A stretch of DNA of 35,890 nt, from positions 32,315,502-32,351,391 of the forward strand of contig NC_069001.1 in assembly GCF_001194135.2 (NCBI RefSeq), given 5' to 3'. A program made the position numbers and the translations under genes. The DNA is from Octopus bimaculoides (Eukaryota). Positions 4,596-35,890 of this stretch are shown here, piece by piece (position 1 is the stretch's first letter; each line of letters begins with the position of its first letter). Under the pieces are notes generated by a model. That model was not told where the DNA came from. It saw only the letters and a program-made list of their open reading frames with translations, and made no database searches.

Positions 4596-5795
4596 ATGGA
4601 AAGTGAATACTCTAAGAATCCAATTCAAATCAAAACAGAGTCTGCGAGTATTGATAGTTCTGATGAGATGCAAAAAGAGACAGAAAAAACGTCATACTTC
4701 TGTAATGTGTGTAAAAAGACATTCTCTCAAAGACGTTGCCTAATTGAGCACAAGCTTATTCACACGGGACGAAAACTATATCATTGTGACATTTGTAGTA
4801 AATCATTCTCTAAAAGTAGTACCTTAAACACACACAAATGTATTCATACAGGAGAGTCACCATATCACTGTGATATCTGTGGTAAGTCGTTCTCTAGAAG
4901 TGGTACATTAAATATACATAAACGCATTCATACAGGAGAGTCACCATATCACTGTGATATCTGTGGTAAATCCTTTTCCACAAGTAGTAAATTAAATACT
5001 CACAAACGCATTCACACTGGTGAGAGACCATATCATTGTGATATCTGTGGTCAATCATTCTCTGAAAATAGTACCTTAAACAAACACAAATATGTTCATA
5101 TAGGAGAGAAGCCACATCAGTGTAATATCTGTGGTCAATCATTTTCTGTAAGTAGTACCTTAAACACGCACAAACATATTCATACAGGAGAGAGACCATA
5201 TCATTGTGATATCTGTGGTAAATCATTTTCTAAGAGTTGTAATTTAAATAGTCACAAACGCATACACACAGGAGAAAAACCATATCACTGTGATATCTGC
5301 GGCAAATCATTTTCTAAGAGTTGTAATTTAAATAGTCACAAACGTACACATACAGGAGAAAAACCATATCACTGTGATATCTGTGGTAAATCATTCTCTG
5401 AAAATGGTCACTTAAATTCTCACAAACGTATTCATACAGGAGAGAAACCATATCACTGTGATATATGTGGTAAATCATTCTCTGAAAGTGGTAATTTAAA
5501 TTCTCACATGCATATTCATACAGGAGAGAAACCATTCCACTGTGATATCTGTGGTAAATCATTTTCTAAAAGTAGTAACTTAAATAGTCACACACATATT
5601 CATACAGGAGAGAGACCATATCATTGTGATATCTGTGGTAAATCGTTTTCTAAAGGTAGTAACTTAAATAGTCATAAGCATATTCATACTGGAGAGAAAC
5701 CATATCACTGTGAGATTTGTGGTAAATCATTCCCAGTTCCATGTAAACTAAGAGCACACAAATATAATATTCATACAGATGGAAAACCATATTGA
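4596..5795 (+). CDS. ZNF-2: 399-aa C2H2 protein, 35-aa leader plus 13 fingers
   Basis: 13 C-x2-C-x12-H-x3(4)-H units with TGEKP-type linkers; ATG context AATAATTATGG shared with ZNF-3 and -4. Confidence 0.95.
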
Positions 5796-10919: not shown

Positions 10920-12122
10920 ATGGAAAATGAATTCTGTGAGAAACCAATTCGAATTAAAACAGAGTCTGAAAGCATTGGTTTTCCTGATGAGATGCAGAAA
11001 GAGATAGAAGACACATTATACTCCTGTGATGTTTGTAGTAAATCGTTTTCTGAAAGTGGTCACTTAGATATTCACAAGTGTGTTCATACAGACGAGAAAC
11101 CACACCACTGTGATATCTGTAGTAAATCATTCTCTTGCGAAAGTCAGCTACTTAGGCACAAACGTATCCATTCACAAGAGACAACATTTCACTGTGATGT
11201 TTGTGGTAAAACATTTTCTAAAAGTCATACATTAACTACTCACAAATGTATTCACTCAGAACAGAAGCTATACCAATGTGATATCTGTGATAAATTGTTT
11301 TCTAAAAGTGGTAACTTGAATTCTCACAAACGTATTCATACAGGAGAGAAACCATATCAGTGTGACATTTGTGGTAAATCATTTACTACAAGTGGTGCTT
11401 TAAACACTCACAAACATATTCATACAGGAAAGAAACCATACCACTGTGAAACTTGTGGTAAATCGTTCTCAGTTCCAAGTAAACTAAGGAGACACATATA
11501 TATTCATACTGGAGAAAAACCATATTGCTGTGATTTCTGTGGCAAATCATTCTCTCAGAATGTTGACTTAGGTAAGCACATACGGATTCACACAGGAGAA
11601 AAACCATATCACTGTGATATCTGTGGTAAATCATGCTCTACAAGCAGTGACTTGATTAAACATAGGCGTGTTCATACAGAAGAAAAACCATTTCTCTGTG
11701 ATATCTGTGGTAAATCCTATTCATTAAGCAGTCACTTAAATACACACAAACATATTCATACAGGAGAGACACTATTTCACTGTGATGTCTGTGGCAAATC
11801 ATTTTCTAGAGGTGGGACCTTAAATGCTCACAAACGTATTCATACAGGTGAGAGGCCGTATCACTGTGATATCTGTGATAGATCATTTTCCACAAGTAGT
11901 TCCTTAAATGCTCACAAACGTTTTCATACAGGTGAAAAACCATATCACTGTAATATTTGTGGTAAATCATTCTCTGAAAATAGTAACTTAAATACTCATA
12001 AACGTATTCATACAGGAGAGAAACCATATGACTGTGATATCTGTGGTAAATCATTCTCTCACAGAAGTGCTTTTAACAATCACAAATATGTTCATAATGC
12101 AGAAAAAAAGCAGTTTCTCTGA
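10920..12122 (+). CDS. ZNF-3: 400-aa C2H2 protein, 35-aa leader plus 13 fingers; vestigial out-of-frame 14th finger to about 12180
   Basis: 13 canonical fingers; candidate acceptor TTCTTTCAG at 10875-10883; [20 protein letters not shown] lies in another frame after the stop. Confidence 0.95.
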
Positions 12123-16918: not shown

Positions 16919-18523
16919 ATGGAAAATGAATTCTGTGAGAAGTCAATTCAAATTAAAACAGAGACTGAAAGCATTGATTCTTGTGATGAGATTCAGAATG
17001 AGAGAGAAGAAACATCATATACCTGTGATATCTGTAAAAAGTCATTCTCTCAAAAAAGTCATCTAACTGATCACAAACATATTCACACAGGAGAGAAGCC
17101 ATATCGTTGTGACATATGTGGTAGACTATTCTCTGCAAGTGGTGCCTTAAACACTCACAAACGCATTCACACAGGAGAGACACCATATCACTGTGATATC
17201 TGTGGTAAATCATTTTCTGTAAATGGTAACTTAAATGCTCACAAACGTATTCATACAGGAAAGAAACCTTATCATTGTGATACCTGCAGTAAATCATTTT
17301 TTGACAGTCACACTTTAAATAATCACAAACATATTCATACAAAAGAGAAACCATATTGCTGTGATATTTGTGGTAAATCTTTCCCAAATAAAAGTAAATT
17401 AAGAAGACACATATATATTCATACAGGAGAAAAACCCTATTGCTGTAACATCTGTGGTAAATCATTCTGTCAAAATGTTGACTTAAATAAGCACATACGG
17501 ATCCATACAGGAGAAAAGCCATTTCAGTGTGATATTTGTGGTAAATCTTGTTCTAGAAGCAGTGACTTGATTATACATAAGCGTGTTCATACAGGAGAAA
17601 AACCGTATCACTGTGATATCTGTGGTAAATCTTTCTCTGGAAGTAGTGCCTTGCATATACATAGGCGTATTCATACAGGAGAGACACCATATCACTGTGA
17701 TATTTGTGGTAAATCATTTTCTGAAGGTGGTACCTTAACTAAGCATAAACGCATTCATACTGGAGAGAAACCATATCACTGTGATATCTGTGGTAAAACA
17801 TTCTCCATTAGGGGAAATATAAATGGGCACAAACGTATCCATACAGGAGAAAAACCATACAAGTGTGATATTTGTGGTCAGTCATTCTCTAAGAACAGAT
17901 ATTTAACTGAACACAAACGTCTCCATACAGGAGAAAAGCCATTTCACTGTGATATCTGTGGTCAGTCATTCTCTGTGAATAGACATTTAACCAAACACAA
18001 ATGCATCCATTCAGGAGAAAAGTTATATCAGTGCGACATCTGTGAGAAATCATTCTCTACCAATAGATATTTAACTAAACACAAATATATTCATACAGGA
18101 GAGGGACCATATCCTCATGACTTTTGTAACAAATCATTTTCTCATGGTAAAGCTTTAATTATACGCAAACACATTAATACAAATGAGAAACCATATCAGT
18201 GTGATATCTGCGGTAAATCATTTTCTCAACAATATTTAACTATACACAAACGCACTCATACAGGTGAGAAGCCATATCTCTGTGTTATCTGTGGGAAATC
18301 TTTCTCTCAAAATGTTCACTTAACTCTACACAAACGCACTCACACAGGTGAGAAGCCTTATCACTGTGATATATGTGGAAAATCTTTCTCTCAAAGAAGT
18401 ACCTTGTCTAATCACAAATATGTCCACAGAGCAGAAAAACTGTACCTCTGTGACATTTGTGGCAAATCATTCTCCAGAAGTTTTCAACTAACGAGACACA
18501 AGCGTCTTCATACAGAGGAGTAG
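16919..18523 (+). CDS. ZNF-4: 534-aa C2H2 protein, 35-aa leader plus 18 finger units (unit 14 degenerate, unit 15 one residue short)
   Basis: ORF track translation; 17 units retain CCHH ligands. Confidence 0.95.
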   Translation: MENEFCEKSIQIKTETESIDSCDEIQNEREETSYTCDICKKSFSQKSHLTDHKHIHTGEKPYRCDICGRLFSASGALNTHKRIHTGETPYHCDICGKSFSVNGNLNAHKRIHTGKKPYHCDTCSKSFFDSHTLNNHKHIHTKEKPYCCDICGKSFPNKSKLRRHIYIHTGEKPYCCNICGKSFCQNVDLNKHIRIHTGEKPFQCDICGKSCSRSSDLIIHKRVHTGEKPYHCDICGKSFSGSSALHIHRRIHTGETPYHCDICGKSFSEGGTLTKHKRIHTGEKPYHCDICGKTFSIRGNINGHKRIHTGEKPYKCDICGQSFSKNRYLTEHKRLHTGEKPFHCDICGQSFSVNRHLTKHKCIHSGEKLYQCDICEKSFSTNRYLTKHKYIHTGEGPYPHDFCNKSFSHGKALIIRKHINTNEKPYQCDICGKSFSQQYLTIHKRTHTGEKPYLCVICGKSFSQNVHLTLHKRTHTGEKPYHCDICGKSFSQRSTLSNHKYVHRAEKLYLCDICGKSFSRSFQLTRHKRLHTEE

Positions 18524-28600: not shown

Positions 28601-29410
28601 GTGGGTATTCAAAGAAAGTAATGACTCCAGAAAATTCTTCCAAGGCCATGTGATTAACATAACAAAAAAAAAAAACGATAAAAAAAGAAGAGATTCGACT
28701 TTTATCGCCCAAATGACGATAAAAGTTTTATAAGTTTTTTAAAATTGTTGAAAAGGTGCCAATTTTGAAAAATATCATGGGGAAGCAATTCTGCCCTTGG
28801 ACCCCTATTAGCAACACCACTAGTTCTGATATAATGATTATAATTATTACAGACTATATTTTCTATTAAGACACTTAGGAAATCTCTCCCTAGCTTATGT
28901 TTTTCTTTTGCAGGTGTTCAAGCTGAATGCAGCCATATTGATCTCACCAGTCTTGAAGTACCTGGGTCTTAGAGAAAACTAAATATATCTCTCTTACACT
29001 CTGTGTCAATCCTTTTTAATTAAATGTTTAACAATGTTTAACAGAATTAAGTTGCGATGGCAGTAAATACAAATATAAAAACTGACTGTATAGTATTAAA
29101 TGAAAAATAAAATGTTTTTGCTCCCCCCATCTATTTAAACACATAAACACCATGTTTAATATTTTTCTTTACTTGCCCTGTAGCAATATTGACAATTAAC
29201 TTACACAATTATCATACACACTTAAAAATACGGAATTGTGTATTTTGGTGTATTTTCGATTGAAGACGTGGTGTATAAATGACATGTAAATAACATAAAC
29301 ATACAAATACAATATCATAAACAGGATGAAAAGAAAGAGGAGGATAAAATTCAGTTTTACTTAAATAAGATAGTGTTAAAAATAACTTTTGTTTAGGTCT
29401 CAATTCTCAC

Positions 29411-31470
29411 CGATTTACTCGTCGTTTTTTGTTTTCAGTTCTTGAAGAGCTGTTATTATGTTTATTCCTAATTTTAGTTAATGTTTCATCTCCTAATAAA
29501 CTCCTTTTTTTGGAAGGTTGCCCTGAAATATGTTCACTTCCATGCTTAGTGCTAATGTGAGAAGGTGAGAATTTGTCCTTGGAAAATTGTTCTTCATCAT
29601 GATCATCATCACGATCATCATTACAATCGTCGTCATCATTATCATCTTCATCGTCATCATCCCCATCGTCGTCGTCATTGTCATCGTCATCACCATCATC
29701 ATCATCGCTCACAATCTCCCCCTTTTCTAAGTCTACACACTCAGTTTCTGACTGTTCAGTGACTGCATGTAAATCACTTTGTGGCTGAGGAGAAAATGTT
29801 TTGAGAGAATTCTGATCTTCTCTCAGACTGTCATTACTACAATATTCCTCATCATGAGTCTGATAGATATCAACTAACTGTGTTGTATCTTCACAATCTT
29901 CATCTTGTTGCCTTCTGTTATGGGCAGCAATTTCTTGTGATAGTTTTTTTTTCATTTCATTCAAAAACTCAAGGCTGTGATTCTTTGCTAGTGTGTCATC
30001 TTGAATAGGATTTTCCACTGATACTTCATAATCAGGTTTACTTGGTGAGAAAAGTTTACGAACAGAGGCTTTCTTCCTTGTCATGGAATCATCGCAGTCA
30101 GAATCTTTACTACTCAATGATTCAGGAGCCATCGAGTTTGTCACACTGCTAGAAAAGCAAGGAGTAATTACAGAAGAACGAGAATCTTCTAAATTAGATT
30201 TGCCAAAACACTCAGTAACTATAGGTTCCTGATTATTCAATGTGACTGAGGTCTTGTAATTTTGTGAAATAACAGGTGAGAGGTTTCTATCACATTTAGT
30301 TGTCAGTTCTGGTGAAGTTACAACTGGATCACACATTTTACTGCGATGTTTGTCACTTGGAGAGAATTTTCCAGTAGAAGATTTAGAGCTCTCTGCATCA
30401 GATCCTGCAGATTTTACTGACAGTTGTGTTACTATACTGATTGGTTCTACAGACTGCTGACAATCAATCAACTTAGAATCTTGTCTCTTGGCATTACCGA
30501 ATTCACTGGAGTCATTAGATAAATTGTGCTTCTCTTTGAGTGGAGCAGTATGAGATTTTGTATTCTCAGACCTCAAAGATAATTTTTTTGTAGACGAAGG
30601 CATCCTTTGGCAATGATGTTGTTTACTACCTTCCCTTTTATGTTCTCTTGAGGAATTTTCCATTTTTATATTTGAAGAATTAGTTTTGTTTCTGGGGTAT
30701 CTTGATGGTTTCCTTTCCAATAATCTGTTATCTGTTGTTTCAGGCTTTTGCAAATCTCAACTAGAATGTTACTCCTCATATCTTCAGTCATTCTGCCTTT
30801 GTTCTCTTGAGCTAGAATGTTAGGAATATTTCCTATCACTTTCTTTGAAATCTCTTCAATCCCTGTAACAGTTGATTGTGATATGTTTACTGCCTCTTGA
30901 GTTTGAACATTTAATAGTTTTCTATAAGCTTCATGTGATATTCAGTCAGGCAGGGAAGTTATATTTATGCTAGCAGATTTTCTCAGATCAATACTTTCAA
31001 ATAATGGATGACGTACAAAGACTTCTTGTAGGAACTTTTATCAGCAGCAGTTTTCTCTGTTTCACATTTAAAACAATTTAATTTTGAATTTGTAGAATGT
31101 GGGGTATTCAGTGTCTGTGAAGAAATTATAATATTTTCGAATGTAGGTGATCATACTGAATCAGAAGGCATCAACTTTGCACTTGGCACAGTAGGAGCTA
31201 TGCAATGAGAATTGGGTTCAAACCTATTTTGATGATGTAAAATACCTTCAGAAATTTTTGAAATAATAATCGAATCACTGGAGGTATAGGCGAAATGAGA
31301 TTGTGTACGGAAGTTGTCAAAATGAGTACATGTGCGGGGATTTCTCTTTTTCATAAGAGTTTCGTCTATAAGTTTGTGAAGGCTTGCTGTTGCTCTGATA
31401 ATCACCGTTCCATTTTGAATATCCCGACTGTCTTTTCTTCAGATAGTTTTCTTTTTCGTAAGACTCCAAT
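29411..31470 (-). CDS. CASP8AP2: CASP8AP2/FLASH-like large exon (exon C): about 50 codons in frame, disrupted about 31340-30760, then 448 open codons (S/D/E/K-rich) to a GTGAGA donor
   Basis: Acceptor CACTTTCCAG at 31480-31471 is phase-compatible with exon B; stop at 31319-31317; ORF 29407-30753, whose stop falls inside the donor CG|GTGAGA at 29410. Confidence 0.7.
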
Positions 31471-31650
31471 CTGGAAAGTGAACCAAAAATCAGAATATAA
31501 ATAGGTGTGTTGCATTGTAAAATTATATTTTCAACAATCGAGACACACAAAACATTAAATAAGTTCTACAAATTAGTTGATTGGTTTCTATGTATTCAAG
31601 GAATTTTGTGATGAAAGATTTAATTTCATCACATTATTTGCTTCATTATC

Positions 31651-31972
31651 AGGCTTGTGACTTGGTGGTTAGGGTATTTGCCTCATGATTGTAAGGTCAT
31701 GAGTTTGAAAACCAGTAACACATTATGTCCTTGAGCAAGACATTTTATTTCACATTGCTCCAGTCCACTCAGCTGGCAAAAATGAGCCATAGCTGTATTT
31801 CAAAAGGGCCAGCCTTGTCACACTCTGTGTCACGCTGAATCTCCCTGAGAACTATGTTAACGGCAAATGTGTCCGTGGTGTGCTCAGCCACTTATATGTT
31901 AATTTCATAAGCAGGTTGTTCCGTTAATCAGATCAAATGCAACCCTCGTTGTCATAACTGATGGAATACCAC
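31651..31972 (+). mobile_element. SINE with centre X and tail 2
   Basis: Centre shared with 20519-20862; tail GGGCCAGCCTTGTCACACTCTGTGTCACGCTGAAT shared with 34065-34450. Confidence 0.8.
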
Positions 31973-32179
31973 GATCAGGCTTGAAAGAAATTGTACTGCG
32001 ATGGGCGAGGAGGTAGGGAAGAATGAATGGCTAAATTATTCAAAAGTGCATCATCAACATCATCATTGTTTTAACCTCCACTTTGCACAGGCCATTGGGG
32101 CAGATTCTCCATGGTCAGATACTCTTGTTATCACCATCCTTTCCCCCACTTGTTCCCATGTGAGATAATAATCTACCAG

Positions 32180-32312
32180 TCTATCGAACAACAAAGGGCC
32201 CCAACATGCTTTCATGATGGACTCGGCGGAATTTGAACTCAGAACATAATGGCAGACGAAATACCGCTAAGCATTTCGCCCGGCATGCTAACGTTTCTGC
32301 CAGCTCGCCACC
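32180..32312 (-). mobile_element. SINE family B head
   Basis: Reverse complement GGTGGCGAGCTGGCAGAAACGTTAGCATGCCGGGCGAAATGCTTAGCGG...TTCTGAGTTCAAATTCCGCC. Confidence 0.8.
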
Positions 32313-33177
32313 TTGAGCTCCACATGTATTATCCTAGTCGTGTCTGCTTCTAGTATAGTGGTTGAACTGCTCCTTGTTAATATGACTAGTTATGATATAC
32401 AGAGCAAATGTAGGAGAAATCACAATAAACAGAAGATTATATCATTTGTTCCTACATGTGTTCCACCATTGTGCTTGTTTGGAGCTCTACACTGGATGCT
32501 TAACTACAACAGATCATTGGAACAACGTTACTGAGAGCTAATGTCTCTGACAGTCCATTGTGGTTAAGCATCTAATTGCGCTTGGAACATTCAATGCAGA
32601 GTTCCCAACAACCACAATGGTGAAATGTATACAGGTACAAATGATATATTTGTGTGTTTATCATAATTGCTCTTTGTCATCATCATCATCATCATCTTTC
32701 TTTAGCACCTGTGTTCCATACTGGCATGGGTTGGACGGTTTGAGAGAAGCTGGCAAGCCAGAGGACTGCACCAAGCACCACTGTCTGCACTGGAATAGTT
32801 TTTACAGATGGATGCCCTTCATAAGACCAACATTTTCTCATGAATATACATGTGTGTGCGAGACAGGTTTTCTTCAGTTTCCATCAATCAAGTCCACTTG
32901 CAAGGCTTTCATCGGCCCAGGGCTATAGTACTATAGTAGAAGACACTTGCTCAAGATGACATGTAGTTGGACTGAAACCAAAACCATGTAGCTAGAAAGC
33001 AAACTTGTTAACTACACAGCTACACCTGTATCTATATCCATCATCATCATCGTTTAACAGTCACTCGCCATGCTGGCATGGGTTGGACGGTGTGACATGG
33101 CGCTGTCCAGACTCCAACTGTCTGTTATAGAGTCAATAAAAAATATTACGAAAAGACAAACAGACCAACAAACTTAC

Positions 33178-33368
33178 TGTTCTCTTAAAGACTCAATATT
33201 ATCGTTTTTCCTTTTGATTTCTGTGCATGCAGTTTTGTACAGCATCGATATATTCTTCTGCAAGTATATGTTTTTCTTTTCCAGTAACTCCATAGCAGCA
33301 GTGCGTTCTTTCACAGTATTTTCCAAAGTAGCAATCTTCTGCAGAGCTTCCTGGTATTTTTGTTGCAA
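33178..33368 (-). CDS. CASP8AP2: CASP8AP2/FLASH exon B: N-terminal coiled coil (Lsm11-binding region)
   Basis: LQKNISMLYKTACTEIKRKNDNIESLREQ matches the conserved FLASH segment (human [29 protein letters not shown], from memory); acceptor TCTTTGTTTTAG; donor CA|GTAAGT. Confidence 0.88.
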
Positions 33369-34064
33369 CTAAAACAAAGAATAATTTCATTAGAGAGTCT
33401 CGAAAGTGGTTGGGTTTCTTACCACACAACCATGGACATGTAATGTAAACATATACACAATGGGCAAAGAAAAAGAAACAAAAACAAAGAGAGGGGCACA
33501 AGTTGTTGTTAGGGTTAGCCCCTTGATATAACAGATCTTCTATGGTCAAAGACATTCCAGCTGAGACCATCCTGTCTTTTTATGAGTATCAAGTACTATT
33601 ATGTGTTTACCACAAGGTCCAGTCCTTGTTGCAGTATAGTGATTTATGCGCTTCAATGACCCCAAGAGCTGTCGCACAAGCTCTTAGAGTCAAAGATTAA
33701 AGGCCAATCTGATATGGACTGCCTCTTCCCGGAGGTATAAATAGGTTTGCATAGGGCCTATACCCCTACCTAGAAAAACAGACTAAGTTATGGAATCATT
33801 GATGGCAAATGAAAACTAACAAGTCTTGGGAGAGGAAGGCCTTCCCATCACCCCATGATGCAGCAACATCTGAAAGGCTGCAGGGTCAACTCCCCTTCTG
33901 AAGCAGGGACCCAACAGGAAAGAAGTAGAACAGATAGCTGAGGGTTAAGAACAGTGAAGAAAAGTCATCAATGACCTATGATCCATAGGGAGTGGAGGAT
34001 TCAAGTTAGTGAATAAGACAATATGTGTCTAATTTTTCTGTCCTGATTTTAAGGGGTACTGTTG

Positions 34065-34450
34065 TAATGTTGGCACACCGTCGCTTACGACGTCGAGGGT
34101 TCCAGTTGATCCGATCAACGGAACAACCTGCTCGTGAAATTAACGTGCAAGTGGCTGAGCACTCCACAGACACGTGTACCCTTAACGTAGTTCTCGGGGA
34201 TATTCAGCGTGACACAGTGTGACAAGGCTGACCCTTTGAATTACAGGCACAACAGAAACAGGAAGTAAGAGTGAGAGAAAGTTGTGGTGGAAGAGTACAG
34301 CAGGGTTCGCCACCATCCCCTGCCGGAGCCTCGTGGAGCTTTTTAGGTGTTTTCGCTCAATAAACACTCACAATGCCTGGTCTGGGAATCGAAACTGCGA
34401 TCCTATGACCGCGAGTCTGCTGCCCTAACCAATGGGCCATTGCGCCTCCT
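34065..34450 (-). mobile_element. SINE family D (tRNA-type head, centre Y, tail 2)
   Basis: Reverse complement GGAGGCGCAATGGCCCATTGGTTAGG...GTTTCGATTCC; tail shared with 31651-31972. Confidence 0.82.
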
Positions 34451-34503
34451 AAGGGGTACTAACACTTCTAGAAGGAGGAATAAATATTTGTTGTTCCACC
34501 TAC

Positions 34504-34608
34504 CTCAGCAAGAGATTCCTTCTCACATGCAAAGTCTTCCTCAAGGATGTCATCATAAAGGTCAAGGTCACCAGTAGGTTGTCGATCAATGAAGTCTGAT
34601 ACACTCAT
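34504..34608 (-). CDS. CASP8AP2: CASP8AP2/FLASH exon A coding part with LDLY motif (not in the ORF track)
   Basis: MSVSDFIDRQPTGDLDLYDDILEEDFACEKESLAE; donor GAG|GTAGGT in phase 0 joins exon B; candidate acceptor TGTCATTGCAG at 34629; an in-frame TGA lies upstream of this ATG. Confidence 0.85.
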
Positions 34609-35540: not shown

Positions 35541-35667
35541 TAGAAGAATTTGAATAACACCCGCGTTTAACTCTATTTATTTATATATATTATACAAAAT
35601 ATTTCACATAAACCTGGAGTTTCTACCTTTAAAAACAAGGTGTTACGCCCTAATTATTTGTACAATT

Positions 35668-35697
35668 TACATACATACACATATATATACATATATG

Positions 35698-35773
<76 letters not shown>

Positions 35774-35890
35774 CATATATGTACATACATATATATATAT
35801 ACATACATAGATATACATATATACATACATATATATACATACATAGATATACATATATACATATAATTATATATATATACATACATACAT
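35668..35890. repeat. Compound (TA)/(TACA) microsatellite
   Basis: Only A, T and C apart from rare G; runs to the window end. Confidence 0.95.

Follow-up and report, generated by a model that had tools for sequence, protein, structure and literature searches.

A probable natural fission of a FLASH/CASP8AP2 paralogue in Octopus bimaculoides

FLASH (CASP8AP2) is the adaptor that makes the U7 small nuclear ribonucleoprotein (snRNP) an active histone pre-mRNA endonuclease, and its C-terminal SANT/Myb-like domain binds NPAT and targets the protein to the histone locus body. Here we describe a FLASH locus in a stretch of 35,890 nucleotides (nt) of the Octopus bimaculoides genome (NCBI RefSeq assembly GCF_001194135.2, contig NC_069001.1, positions 32,315,502 to 32,351,391 of the forward strand; hereafter the window), in which the N-terminal module and the remainder of the protein appear to belong to two separate open reading frames (ORFs). 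FLASH proteins carry an LDLY (or LDIY) motif near the N-terminus. In human FLASH this motif (LDLY, residues 55-58) serves to recruit the cleavage complex, Lsm11 is bound by residues 100-139, and the dimer is made by residues 51-137 (PMC5636114). Drosophila FLASH 1-178 is fully active in vitro, the C-terminal 111 amino acids (aa) being needed only for histone locus body targeting, and viability is also restored by a fly FLASH that lacks them (PMC4896052). Taken together, experiments show the first 140-180 residues to be sufficient in vitro, the remainder serving mainly to concentrate FLASH in the histone locus body. A text search for CASP8AP2 together with octopus, made in a limited set of papers, gave no match. 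The evidence from the octopus locus points to a real, selected gene fission, namely a naturally split FLASH paralogue, a reading to which we give a probability of roughly 0.8.

The two reading frames of the O. bimaculoides locus

All gene coordinates refer to the minus strand of the window. Exon A (34504..34608) opens with the ATG of ORF1 at its first bases (34608), codes for MSVSDFIDRQPTGDLDLYDDILEEDFACEKESLAE with LDLY at residues 15-18 and ends at the donor GAG/GTAGGT; the exon is conserved in Octopus sinensis. Exon B (33178..33368), 98.95% identical to its O. sinensis counterpart, is 191 nt long, not 192, and carries the coiled-coil core, aligned to human FLASH residues about 75-138; its donor is CA/GTAAGT and two codon bases are left over. 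The ORF1 part of exon C (31317..31470) supplies the last 51 codons and the stop TGA at 31319-31317. Joining the three exons gave 450 nt, translated into 149 aa and the stop, as a first-pass annotation of this DNA, made from the letters alone, had proposed. The predicted product begins with MSVSDFIDRQPTGDLDLYDD and has GDLDLYDDIL as residues 13-22.

A profile of the first 130 residues retrieved the human CASP8AP2 N-terminal domain (NTD) structures 6AOZ, 6AP0 and 6ANO (E = 8e-10 to 9e-9, profile positions 14-97), and the 6AOZ match at E = 8e-10 spans LDLY through the coiled coil. Octopus residues 14-97 align with human 55-138, with LDLY on the human LDLY 55-58, and ORF1 therefore contains the entire active module, including the counterpart of the human coiled coil (residues 71-137) in which the dimer and the Lsm11-binding site lie. 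An exhaustive HMMER search had vertebrate CASP8AP2 and bivalve proteins among its matches; no Pfam model exists for the FLASH NTD. Judged by these profile matches, the N-terminus of ORF1 is the FLASH/CASP8AP2 NTD, which bears out the identity given to it in the first-pass annotation.

Further downstream, a frame of 448 codons stays open from 30753 to 29407. It includes 2 CGA codons, whose persistence had been noted before, and its first ATG, at 30663, opens with MENSSREH and has a strong start context (A at -3, G at +4). From this ATG to the TGA at 29409-29407 we delimited ORF2 (29407..30663, 418 codons), an annotated gene of O. bimaculoides, whose product has a single recorded place, in O. 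bimaculoides CM046621.1 at about 32.34 Mb, with an exact match to the window. The protein is serine-rich and acidic with a long Asp run, encoded by a (GAT)n-type microsatellite at 29594-29706. This microsatellite and one 6-nt indel account for all ORF2 length differences between species. Comparison of ORF2 with Pfam and PDB gave no convincing match, only noise.

The end of ORF2 is formed by CGG TGA, which overlaps a donor-like CG/GTGAGA (window 29410-29402, minus strand). Its score of 3.1 is like that of real donors, so the donor seen at this place in the first-pass annotation stands as a sequence, while its use is not borne out: the models of all relatives that cover this end stop at the TGA, and a Logan contig containing the 3' part of ORF2 reads unspliced through the site. 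A protein ending in R-x-N/I-R followed by the stop is kept in both octopus paralogues (see below) and in Argonauta. The Logan contig (SRR16213284_31190, 1012 nt) matches the window at 97.6% over 30084-29175, covering ORF2 and 3' flank; its first 110 nt match no fetched sequence, and the break does not lie at an AG. Positions 29040..29406 are a probable 3' untranslated region (UTR), with ATTAAA at 29160 and 29020 and the end of a conserved block at about 29040.

A fused paralogue and the lesions between the two frames

The best homologue in a first protein search was a second FLASH copy of O. bimaculoides with 617 aa (XP_014788063, P0001). It lies at about 32.68 Mb of this chromosome, in inverted orientation and some 330 kb from the window locus. 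It has the same exons A and B, and its last exon is one continuous ORF that codes for residues 99-617 and has the same end (KKRREIR and stop). The window locus is thus a paralogue, one of two FLASH copies and not the sole FLASH gene, and the suggestion that FLASH had been cut to a mini-module in this species no longer holds. The same pair is present in O. sinensis, inverted and separated by about 395 kb (fused copy XP_029648977), and both copies are also found in O. vulgaris, the fused one (CAI9738241) bearing the UniProt name CASP8-associated protein 2. The fused and split copies are alike in their three-exon structure, internal MENSSREH and protein end; their identity is 72% over the NTD and about 70% over the part corresponding to ORF2. 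The fused copy differs in its continuous last exon, its Arg/Asp/Ser-rich linker and the lack of an insert of 509 nt, and it evolves 3-5 times faster at non-synonymous sites. Where ORF2 has the Asp run, the fused copy has a Lys/Ser/His-rich stretch. No Pfam family was detected in the 617 aa of the fused copy. The C-terminal SANT/Myb-like domain was found neither in ORF2 nor in the fused copy, the rest of the window not having been scanned exhaustively, and all gene models end at the same stop.

Annotations of the split copy in other Octopus species follow the same division. In both O. sinensis and O. vulgaris a gene for 149 aa is annotated, with an ORF2 gene of its own further downstream. The recorded 149-aa protein (P0078) is 99% identical to ORF1 of the window and its UniRef name refers to two Octopus taxa, and the O. 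sinensis orthologue of ORF2 (P0075) has 413 aa. In O. vulgaris, the models of the fused (P0070) and split (P0076) copies include alternative isoforms that splice from the last exon to distant downstream exons, leaving it within the Asp run (fused copy) or behind SPQPQ (split copy); in that annotation, both paralogues are thus alternatively spliced in their C-terminal part. A word-indexed protein search with the N-terminus and the translated region between the ORFs gave no match, missing even the 72%-identical fused copy over 130 aa; its profile version returned 3 proteins only and missed P0001 and P0002, which makes absence from it, including that of squid and other octopods, uninformative.

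Between the two ORFs lies a spacer of 653 nt (30664..31316), which offers no usable frame and contains 7 ATGs as well as ATTAAA motifs at 31082 and 30915. Three-frame translation of 31480-30640 gave no continuous frame from 31317 to 30753, in agreement with the broken stretch at about 31340-30760 and the TGA at 31153 in the first-pass annotation. The least-broken path leads from the ORF1 frame through frame 0 and frame 2 to the ORF2 frame and still hits the TGA at 31153-31151 and another near 30945. Alignment with the fused paralogue (BLAST and MAFFT) delimited an insert of about 509 nt (30865..31373), absent from that copy and placed directly after the KPSQ codons; its length is 2 mod 3, which shifts the frame, and no repeat copy of it was found in the window or the fetched loci. 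The following 111 positions (30754..30864) are a relic of the Arg/Asp/Ser-rich linker, corresponding to residues 131-187 of the fused copy (tblastn and multi-species alignment). In the ancestral frame the relic has 5 stops (TGA 30858, TAA 30822, TGA 30786, TAA 30771 and TGA 30759); it has also lost 51 nt in one deletion and shows another gap of one codon. In place of TGA 30786 and TGA 30759 the fused copy has CGA codons; the change from CGA to TGA at CpG sites is the expected first loss once a frame is unread.

The pattern of substitutions between O. bimaculoides and O. sinensis, the pair used for all ratios of non-synonymous to synonymous substitution rates (dN/dS), shows that both halves are constrained. 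In the split copy dN/dS is 0.075 for ORF1 (6 synonymous and 2 non-synonymous differences) and 0.116 for ORF2 (17.5 and 8.5), compared with 0.376 for the fused copy overall and 0.54 for its part matching ORF2. By our own binomial estimate, made outside the tool analyses, the chance of at least 6 synonymous changes among 8 is about 1e-3. Within the exon C part of ORF1, 4 of the 4 differences are synonymous, and the ORF1 frame is therefore read up to its stop. Tajima relative-rate tests with Argonauta as outgroup counted 12 unique changes in the fused copy against 1 in the split copy for the N-terminus (p = 0.002) and 54 against 11 for the C part (p = 1e-7). By these counts the fused copy is the fast-evolving one. 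When scored against NTDs from human, bivalve and another cephalopod, the NTD of the window is also closer to them than that of the fused copy. Synonymous divergence (dS) between the paralogues is 0.34-0.5 when copy 1 is taken from O. bimaculoides and reaches at most about 0.78 when it is taken from O. sinensis; between the two Octopus species it is 0.04-0.17, and against Argonauta it is saturated. On these values the paralogues arose after the Argonauta lineage had branched off, and their duplication is several times as old as the divergence of O. bimaculoides and O. sinensis.

These values bear on the possibility that the window holds a decaying duplicate, an unprocessed pseudogene whose work is done by the fused copy about 330 kb away. 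An intact paralogue on the same chromosome and a linker relic with five stops next to a frame-shifting 509-nt insertion are what such a locus could have, and the first-pass annotation, which had listed this option, was right about the duplicate. It was not right about the decay, as purifying selection on the split copy is stronger than on the intact one. A pseudogene is expected to have dN/dS near 1 and scattered, species-specific lesions; here the lesions are shared between species and limited to the spacer, 653 of about 2060 nt, and neither ORF has acquired a new stop or a frame-shifting indel since O. bimaculoides and O. sinensis separated. When neutral change by substitutions alone was simulated at the divergence of the paralogues, ORF2 stayed open in 0 of 2000 runs. 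We regard decay as very improbable, and the earlier argument that the clustering of the lesions speaks against uniform pseudogene decay is upheld. Both ORFs are open, separately constrained and conserved as separate ORFs in Octopus and Argonauta, as expected of a split gene, and among the three options that had been listed (a natural mini-FLASH or split gene, a decaying duplicate, an assembly error) the first is the one that the evidence favours.

Conservation of the last exon and the products it may encode

The spacer is conserved between the two Octopus species about as strongly as the frames around it. Compared with O. sinensis, identity is 97.4% with 0 indels in the ORF1 part of exon C, 97.1% (19 mismatches) with 0 indels in the 653-nt spacer, and 97.9% with 2 indel events, both in frame, in ORF2. 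In bins of 100 nt this forms a uniform block of 95-100% identity from about 31540 to about 29040; further downstream identity is 91-93% with many indels, and the alignable parts of intron 1 and the farther downstream flank have 86-90%. The 19 substitutions in the spacer compare with about 48 expected for neutral decay at the local synonymous rate (P = 1e-6), so that the spacer, too, is under purifying selection. The block looks like one long last exon with its 3' end near the ATTAAA motifs at 29160 and 29020. Introns and flanks contain short interspersed repeats (window 34447-34071, 33040-32863, 31973-31790, 12770-12369 and others), present in many copies at 72-93% identity in all fetched Octopus loci, and it is these repeats that make introns 1 and 2 differ in size from one species to another.

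Every stop and frame break of the spacer is common to the O. sinensis and O. vulgaris loci. This answers the idea that a local assembly or sequencing error produced the frameshifts and stops, for which the clustering of the lesions in one short stretch speaks and nothing more. Independent assemblies of O. sinensis and O. vulgaris agree with the window in frames, stops and length, the 653 nt showing 0 indels, and Argonauta hians has an equivalent split. Two assemblies made independently could not repeat one error at every base, and a structure kept in exact register in two further species is not due to chance; an assembly error is almost certainly not the explanation.

We considered other identities for the spacer itself. 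No copy within the window or the fetched loci marks it as a repeat or transposon, and no tandem repeat was found in it, the only one being the Asp-run microsatellite inside ORF2. As a structured RNA it is less folded than its shuffles (z = +1.87), and an Rfam scan of the whole window gave no match and so no SECIS-like element. Hidden-frame coding was also rejected: for the three frames in turn, 8, 8 and 3 of the 19 differences are at third positions, and the substitutions are mostly non-synonymous in each locally open frame, with no codon pattern. A second match to the fused copy, 'KSPHMYSF' to 'KSPRYFDS', was unsupported by local alignment. A 90-codon non-ancestral frame (TAAAAATG) runs through the linker relic at window 30938-30668 (minus strand) to a TAA 5 nt before the ATG of ORF2, and splicing from a donor at 31405 to the AG at 30864-30863 would put it in frame with ORF1. 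Given the mostly non-synonymous substitutions, it is probably not coding.

The locus might still make one protein, if recoding, or a splice missing from the annotations (such as one between the donor of exon B and the weak acceptor at 30691), joined the NTD to ORF2. The phase 2 donor of exon B and CCCCAG/A at 30691 are in frame, the AG and its pyrimidines being kept in O. sinensis; a second in-phase pair is formed by the donor at 31405 with the AG at 30757-30756, and a regulated intron or exon could show conservation like that of the spacer. We scanned all GT donors in the ORF1 part of exon C and the exon B donor against all AG acceptors that enter the ORF2 frame after its last stop. The in-frame acceptors all score at most -3.4, compared with +4.5 and +5.5 for the real acceptors, on a rough consensus scale built from human splice-site frequencies, and none has a pyrimidine tract. 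The first-pass annotation had likewise seen no strong splice pair that skips the damaged part. A. hians lacks a comparable donor or acceptor, the annotations of three species keep the ORFs apart, and the purely synonymous change in the exon C codons of ORF1 shows that they are read to their stop. A fused product by bypass splicing is unlikely, and we consider a single protein from this locus improbable.

The organisation that fits these data best is a long last exon (about 31470-29040) containing, in order, the tail and stop of ORF1, the untranslated 653-nt spacer, ORF2 and the 3' UTR. ORF1 would give a 149-aa mini-FLASH with LDLY, the coiled-coil dimer and a short basic tail, which by homology would bind the Lsm11 N-terminus on the U7 snRNP and recruit the CPSF73 histone cleavage complex; we infer that it is a working protein. 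ORF2 would give a separate 418-aa acidic, serine-rich protein from the conserved MENSSREH ATG, the non-catalytic remainder of octopod FLASH. The most likely source of this protein is a separate transcript that begins within the spacer, since with 7 ATGs ahead of ORF2 ribosomes are unlikely to re-initiate there once they have read ORF1; alternatively, internal initiation on a bicistronic mRNA would produce it. An exact look-up of the spacer ORFs in transcript contigs gave no match, and no Logan contig over the spacer or ORF1 was retrieved.

Another arrangement would leave ORF2 as the sole functional product, exons A to C forming a 5' leader whose 149-codon upstream ORF regulates its translation. 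ORF1 and ORF2 apparently lie in one conserved exon block, O. bimaculoides annotates ORF2 only, and three O. sinensis protein accessions share the ORF2 sequence, all of which would suit a leader. Set against this are the protein-level constraint on ORF1, with its 6 synonymous and 2 non-synonymous differences, and the ancestral NTD residues shared with human and bivalve FLASH, which ORF1 keeps better than the fused copy does. The seven spacer ATGs also speak against re-initiation. We find a regulatory role alone decidedly improbable.

Several points weigh against a selected fission. The dN/dS of 0.075 for ORF1 rests on only 8 substitutions, and the exact 149-aa sequence is without annotation in O. 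bimaculoides itself. The two-gene annotation in other species could partly reflect gene predictors, for which a stop is a barrier between ORFs. In its conservation the spacer equals the proximal 3' UTR, which fits an exonic UTR but does not assign it to a particular transcript. Finally, the mini-FLASH is without the known locus-body targeting domain, and its efficiency in vivo is uncertain.

Origin of the split and comparison with known systems

A split of the same kind is present in Argonauta hians. Here a 140-aa FLASH N-terminal protein (GAB1606835.1) has its stop soon after the coiled coil, and a separate 581-aa gene starts with MENSSREHKREG (MENSSREH) and ends with KRRRVNR and a stop; 1.1 kb of 48-bp satellite and (CA)n repeats lie between the two. 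A second FLASH-like gene of A. hians, annotated with 671 aa, lies about 6 kb downstream on the same strand (L003 20690-21921), its exon B sharing no more than 43-46% identity with the other copies. A duplicate together with a split copy is thus found in Argonauta as well. The contig of an outgroup cephalopod (L006) contains exon B only and gives no view of the ancestral state. In bivalve FLASH the coiled coil is followed by an Arg/Ser-rich stretch.

We favour, roughly three to one, an ancestor that was continuous like bivalve FLASH, with independent fission in Argonauta and in one Octopus paralogue; an ancestor that was already split, with the fused Octopus copy re-joined, is disfavoured to the same degree and would need five stop reversions and a frame-restoring deletion. 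The stop TGA 30759 is common to the window and Argonauta, the fused copy having CGA there, and a parallel change is easy because this is a CpG site. Starting from a continuous ancestral exon, the split would have come about when the insertion of 509 nt shifted the frame; the linker thus released would then have gained its CpG-driven stops. All copies, the fused one included, keep the Met of MENSSREH, and the ancestral gene may already have used it; its conservation in the fused copy would then mean an ancestral exon with two products, which would have allowed fission. A broader picture, which we hold tentatively and place somewhat short of an even bet, is that octopod FLASH split at least once and possibly twice independently, into a mini-FLASH that binds Lsm11 and the cleavage complex and a separate C-terminal protein, the slowly evolving mini-FLASH being the working histone pre-mRNA processing factor, the fast-evolving fused copy moving toward another role and the ancestral gene already making two products from one exon.

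The rest of the window contains intact tandem C2H2 zinc-finger ORFs on the plus strand at 4596-5795, 10920-12122 and 16919-18523 (399, 400 and 534 aa; Pfam zf-H2C2_2, E down to 1e-127), with similar sequence at about 493-1657. The window thus belongs to a cluster of C2H2 zinc-finger genes. A related zinc-finger gene flanks the fused FLASH copy (L001 3036-4544), and the FLASH duplication may have ridden on the expansion of this cluster. Window 35640-35890 is a low-complexity TA/CA-rich simple repeat.

The three ORFs currently bear unrelated names (PFC0760c, CWC22 homolog and SRRM5), which matters for cephalopod genome annotation. If our reading is true, a naturally fixed and strongly conserved FLASH of the N-terminal module only is a natural test of how much of the protein is needed in vivo. 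With a split copy, its retained remainder and a fused paralogue for comparison, the locus would also offer a clean, datable fission after duplication.

Like human and Drosophila FLASH, the octopus module has LDLY followed by an 80-residue coiled coil that includes the mapped Lsm11-binding stretch. It differs in standing alone, as 149 aa with its own stop, whereas human FLASH has 1982 aa and fly FLASH 844 aa, both carrying the C-terminal histone-locus-body targeting region that the octopus mini-FLASH is without. It also resembles the laboratory truncations of FLASH (N-terminal fragments, and the Drosophila internal-deletion and 1-733 transgenes), in which the N-terminal module is enough for cleavage in vitro (PMC4896052, PMC5636114). 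Those truncations were engineered, whereas the octopus version is naturally fixed and conserved and coexists with a fused paralogue. The general pattern of gene fission after duplication, in which one duplicate stays fused and the other is broken between two modules with both halves retained, is recognisable here; what sets the octopus locus apart is that the halves stay adjacent, apparently in one exon, and that a similar split is found in a second octopod lineage.

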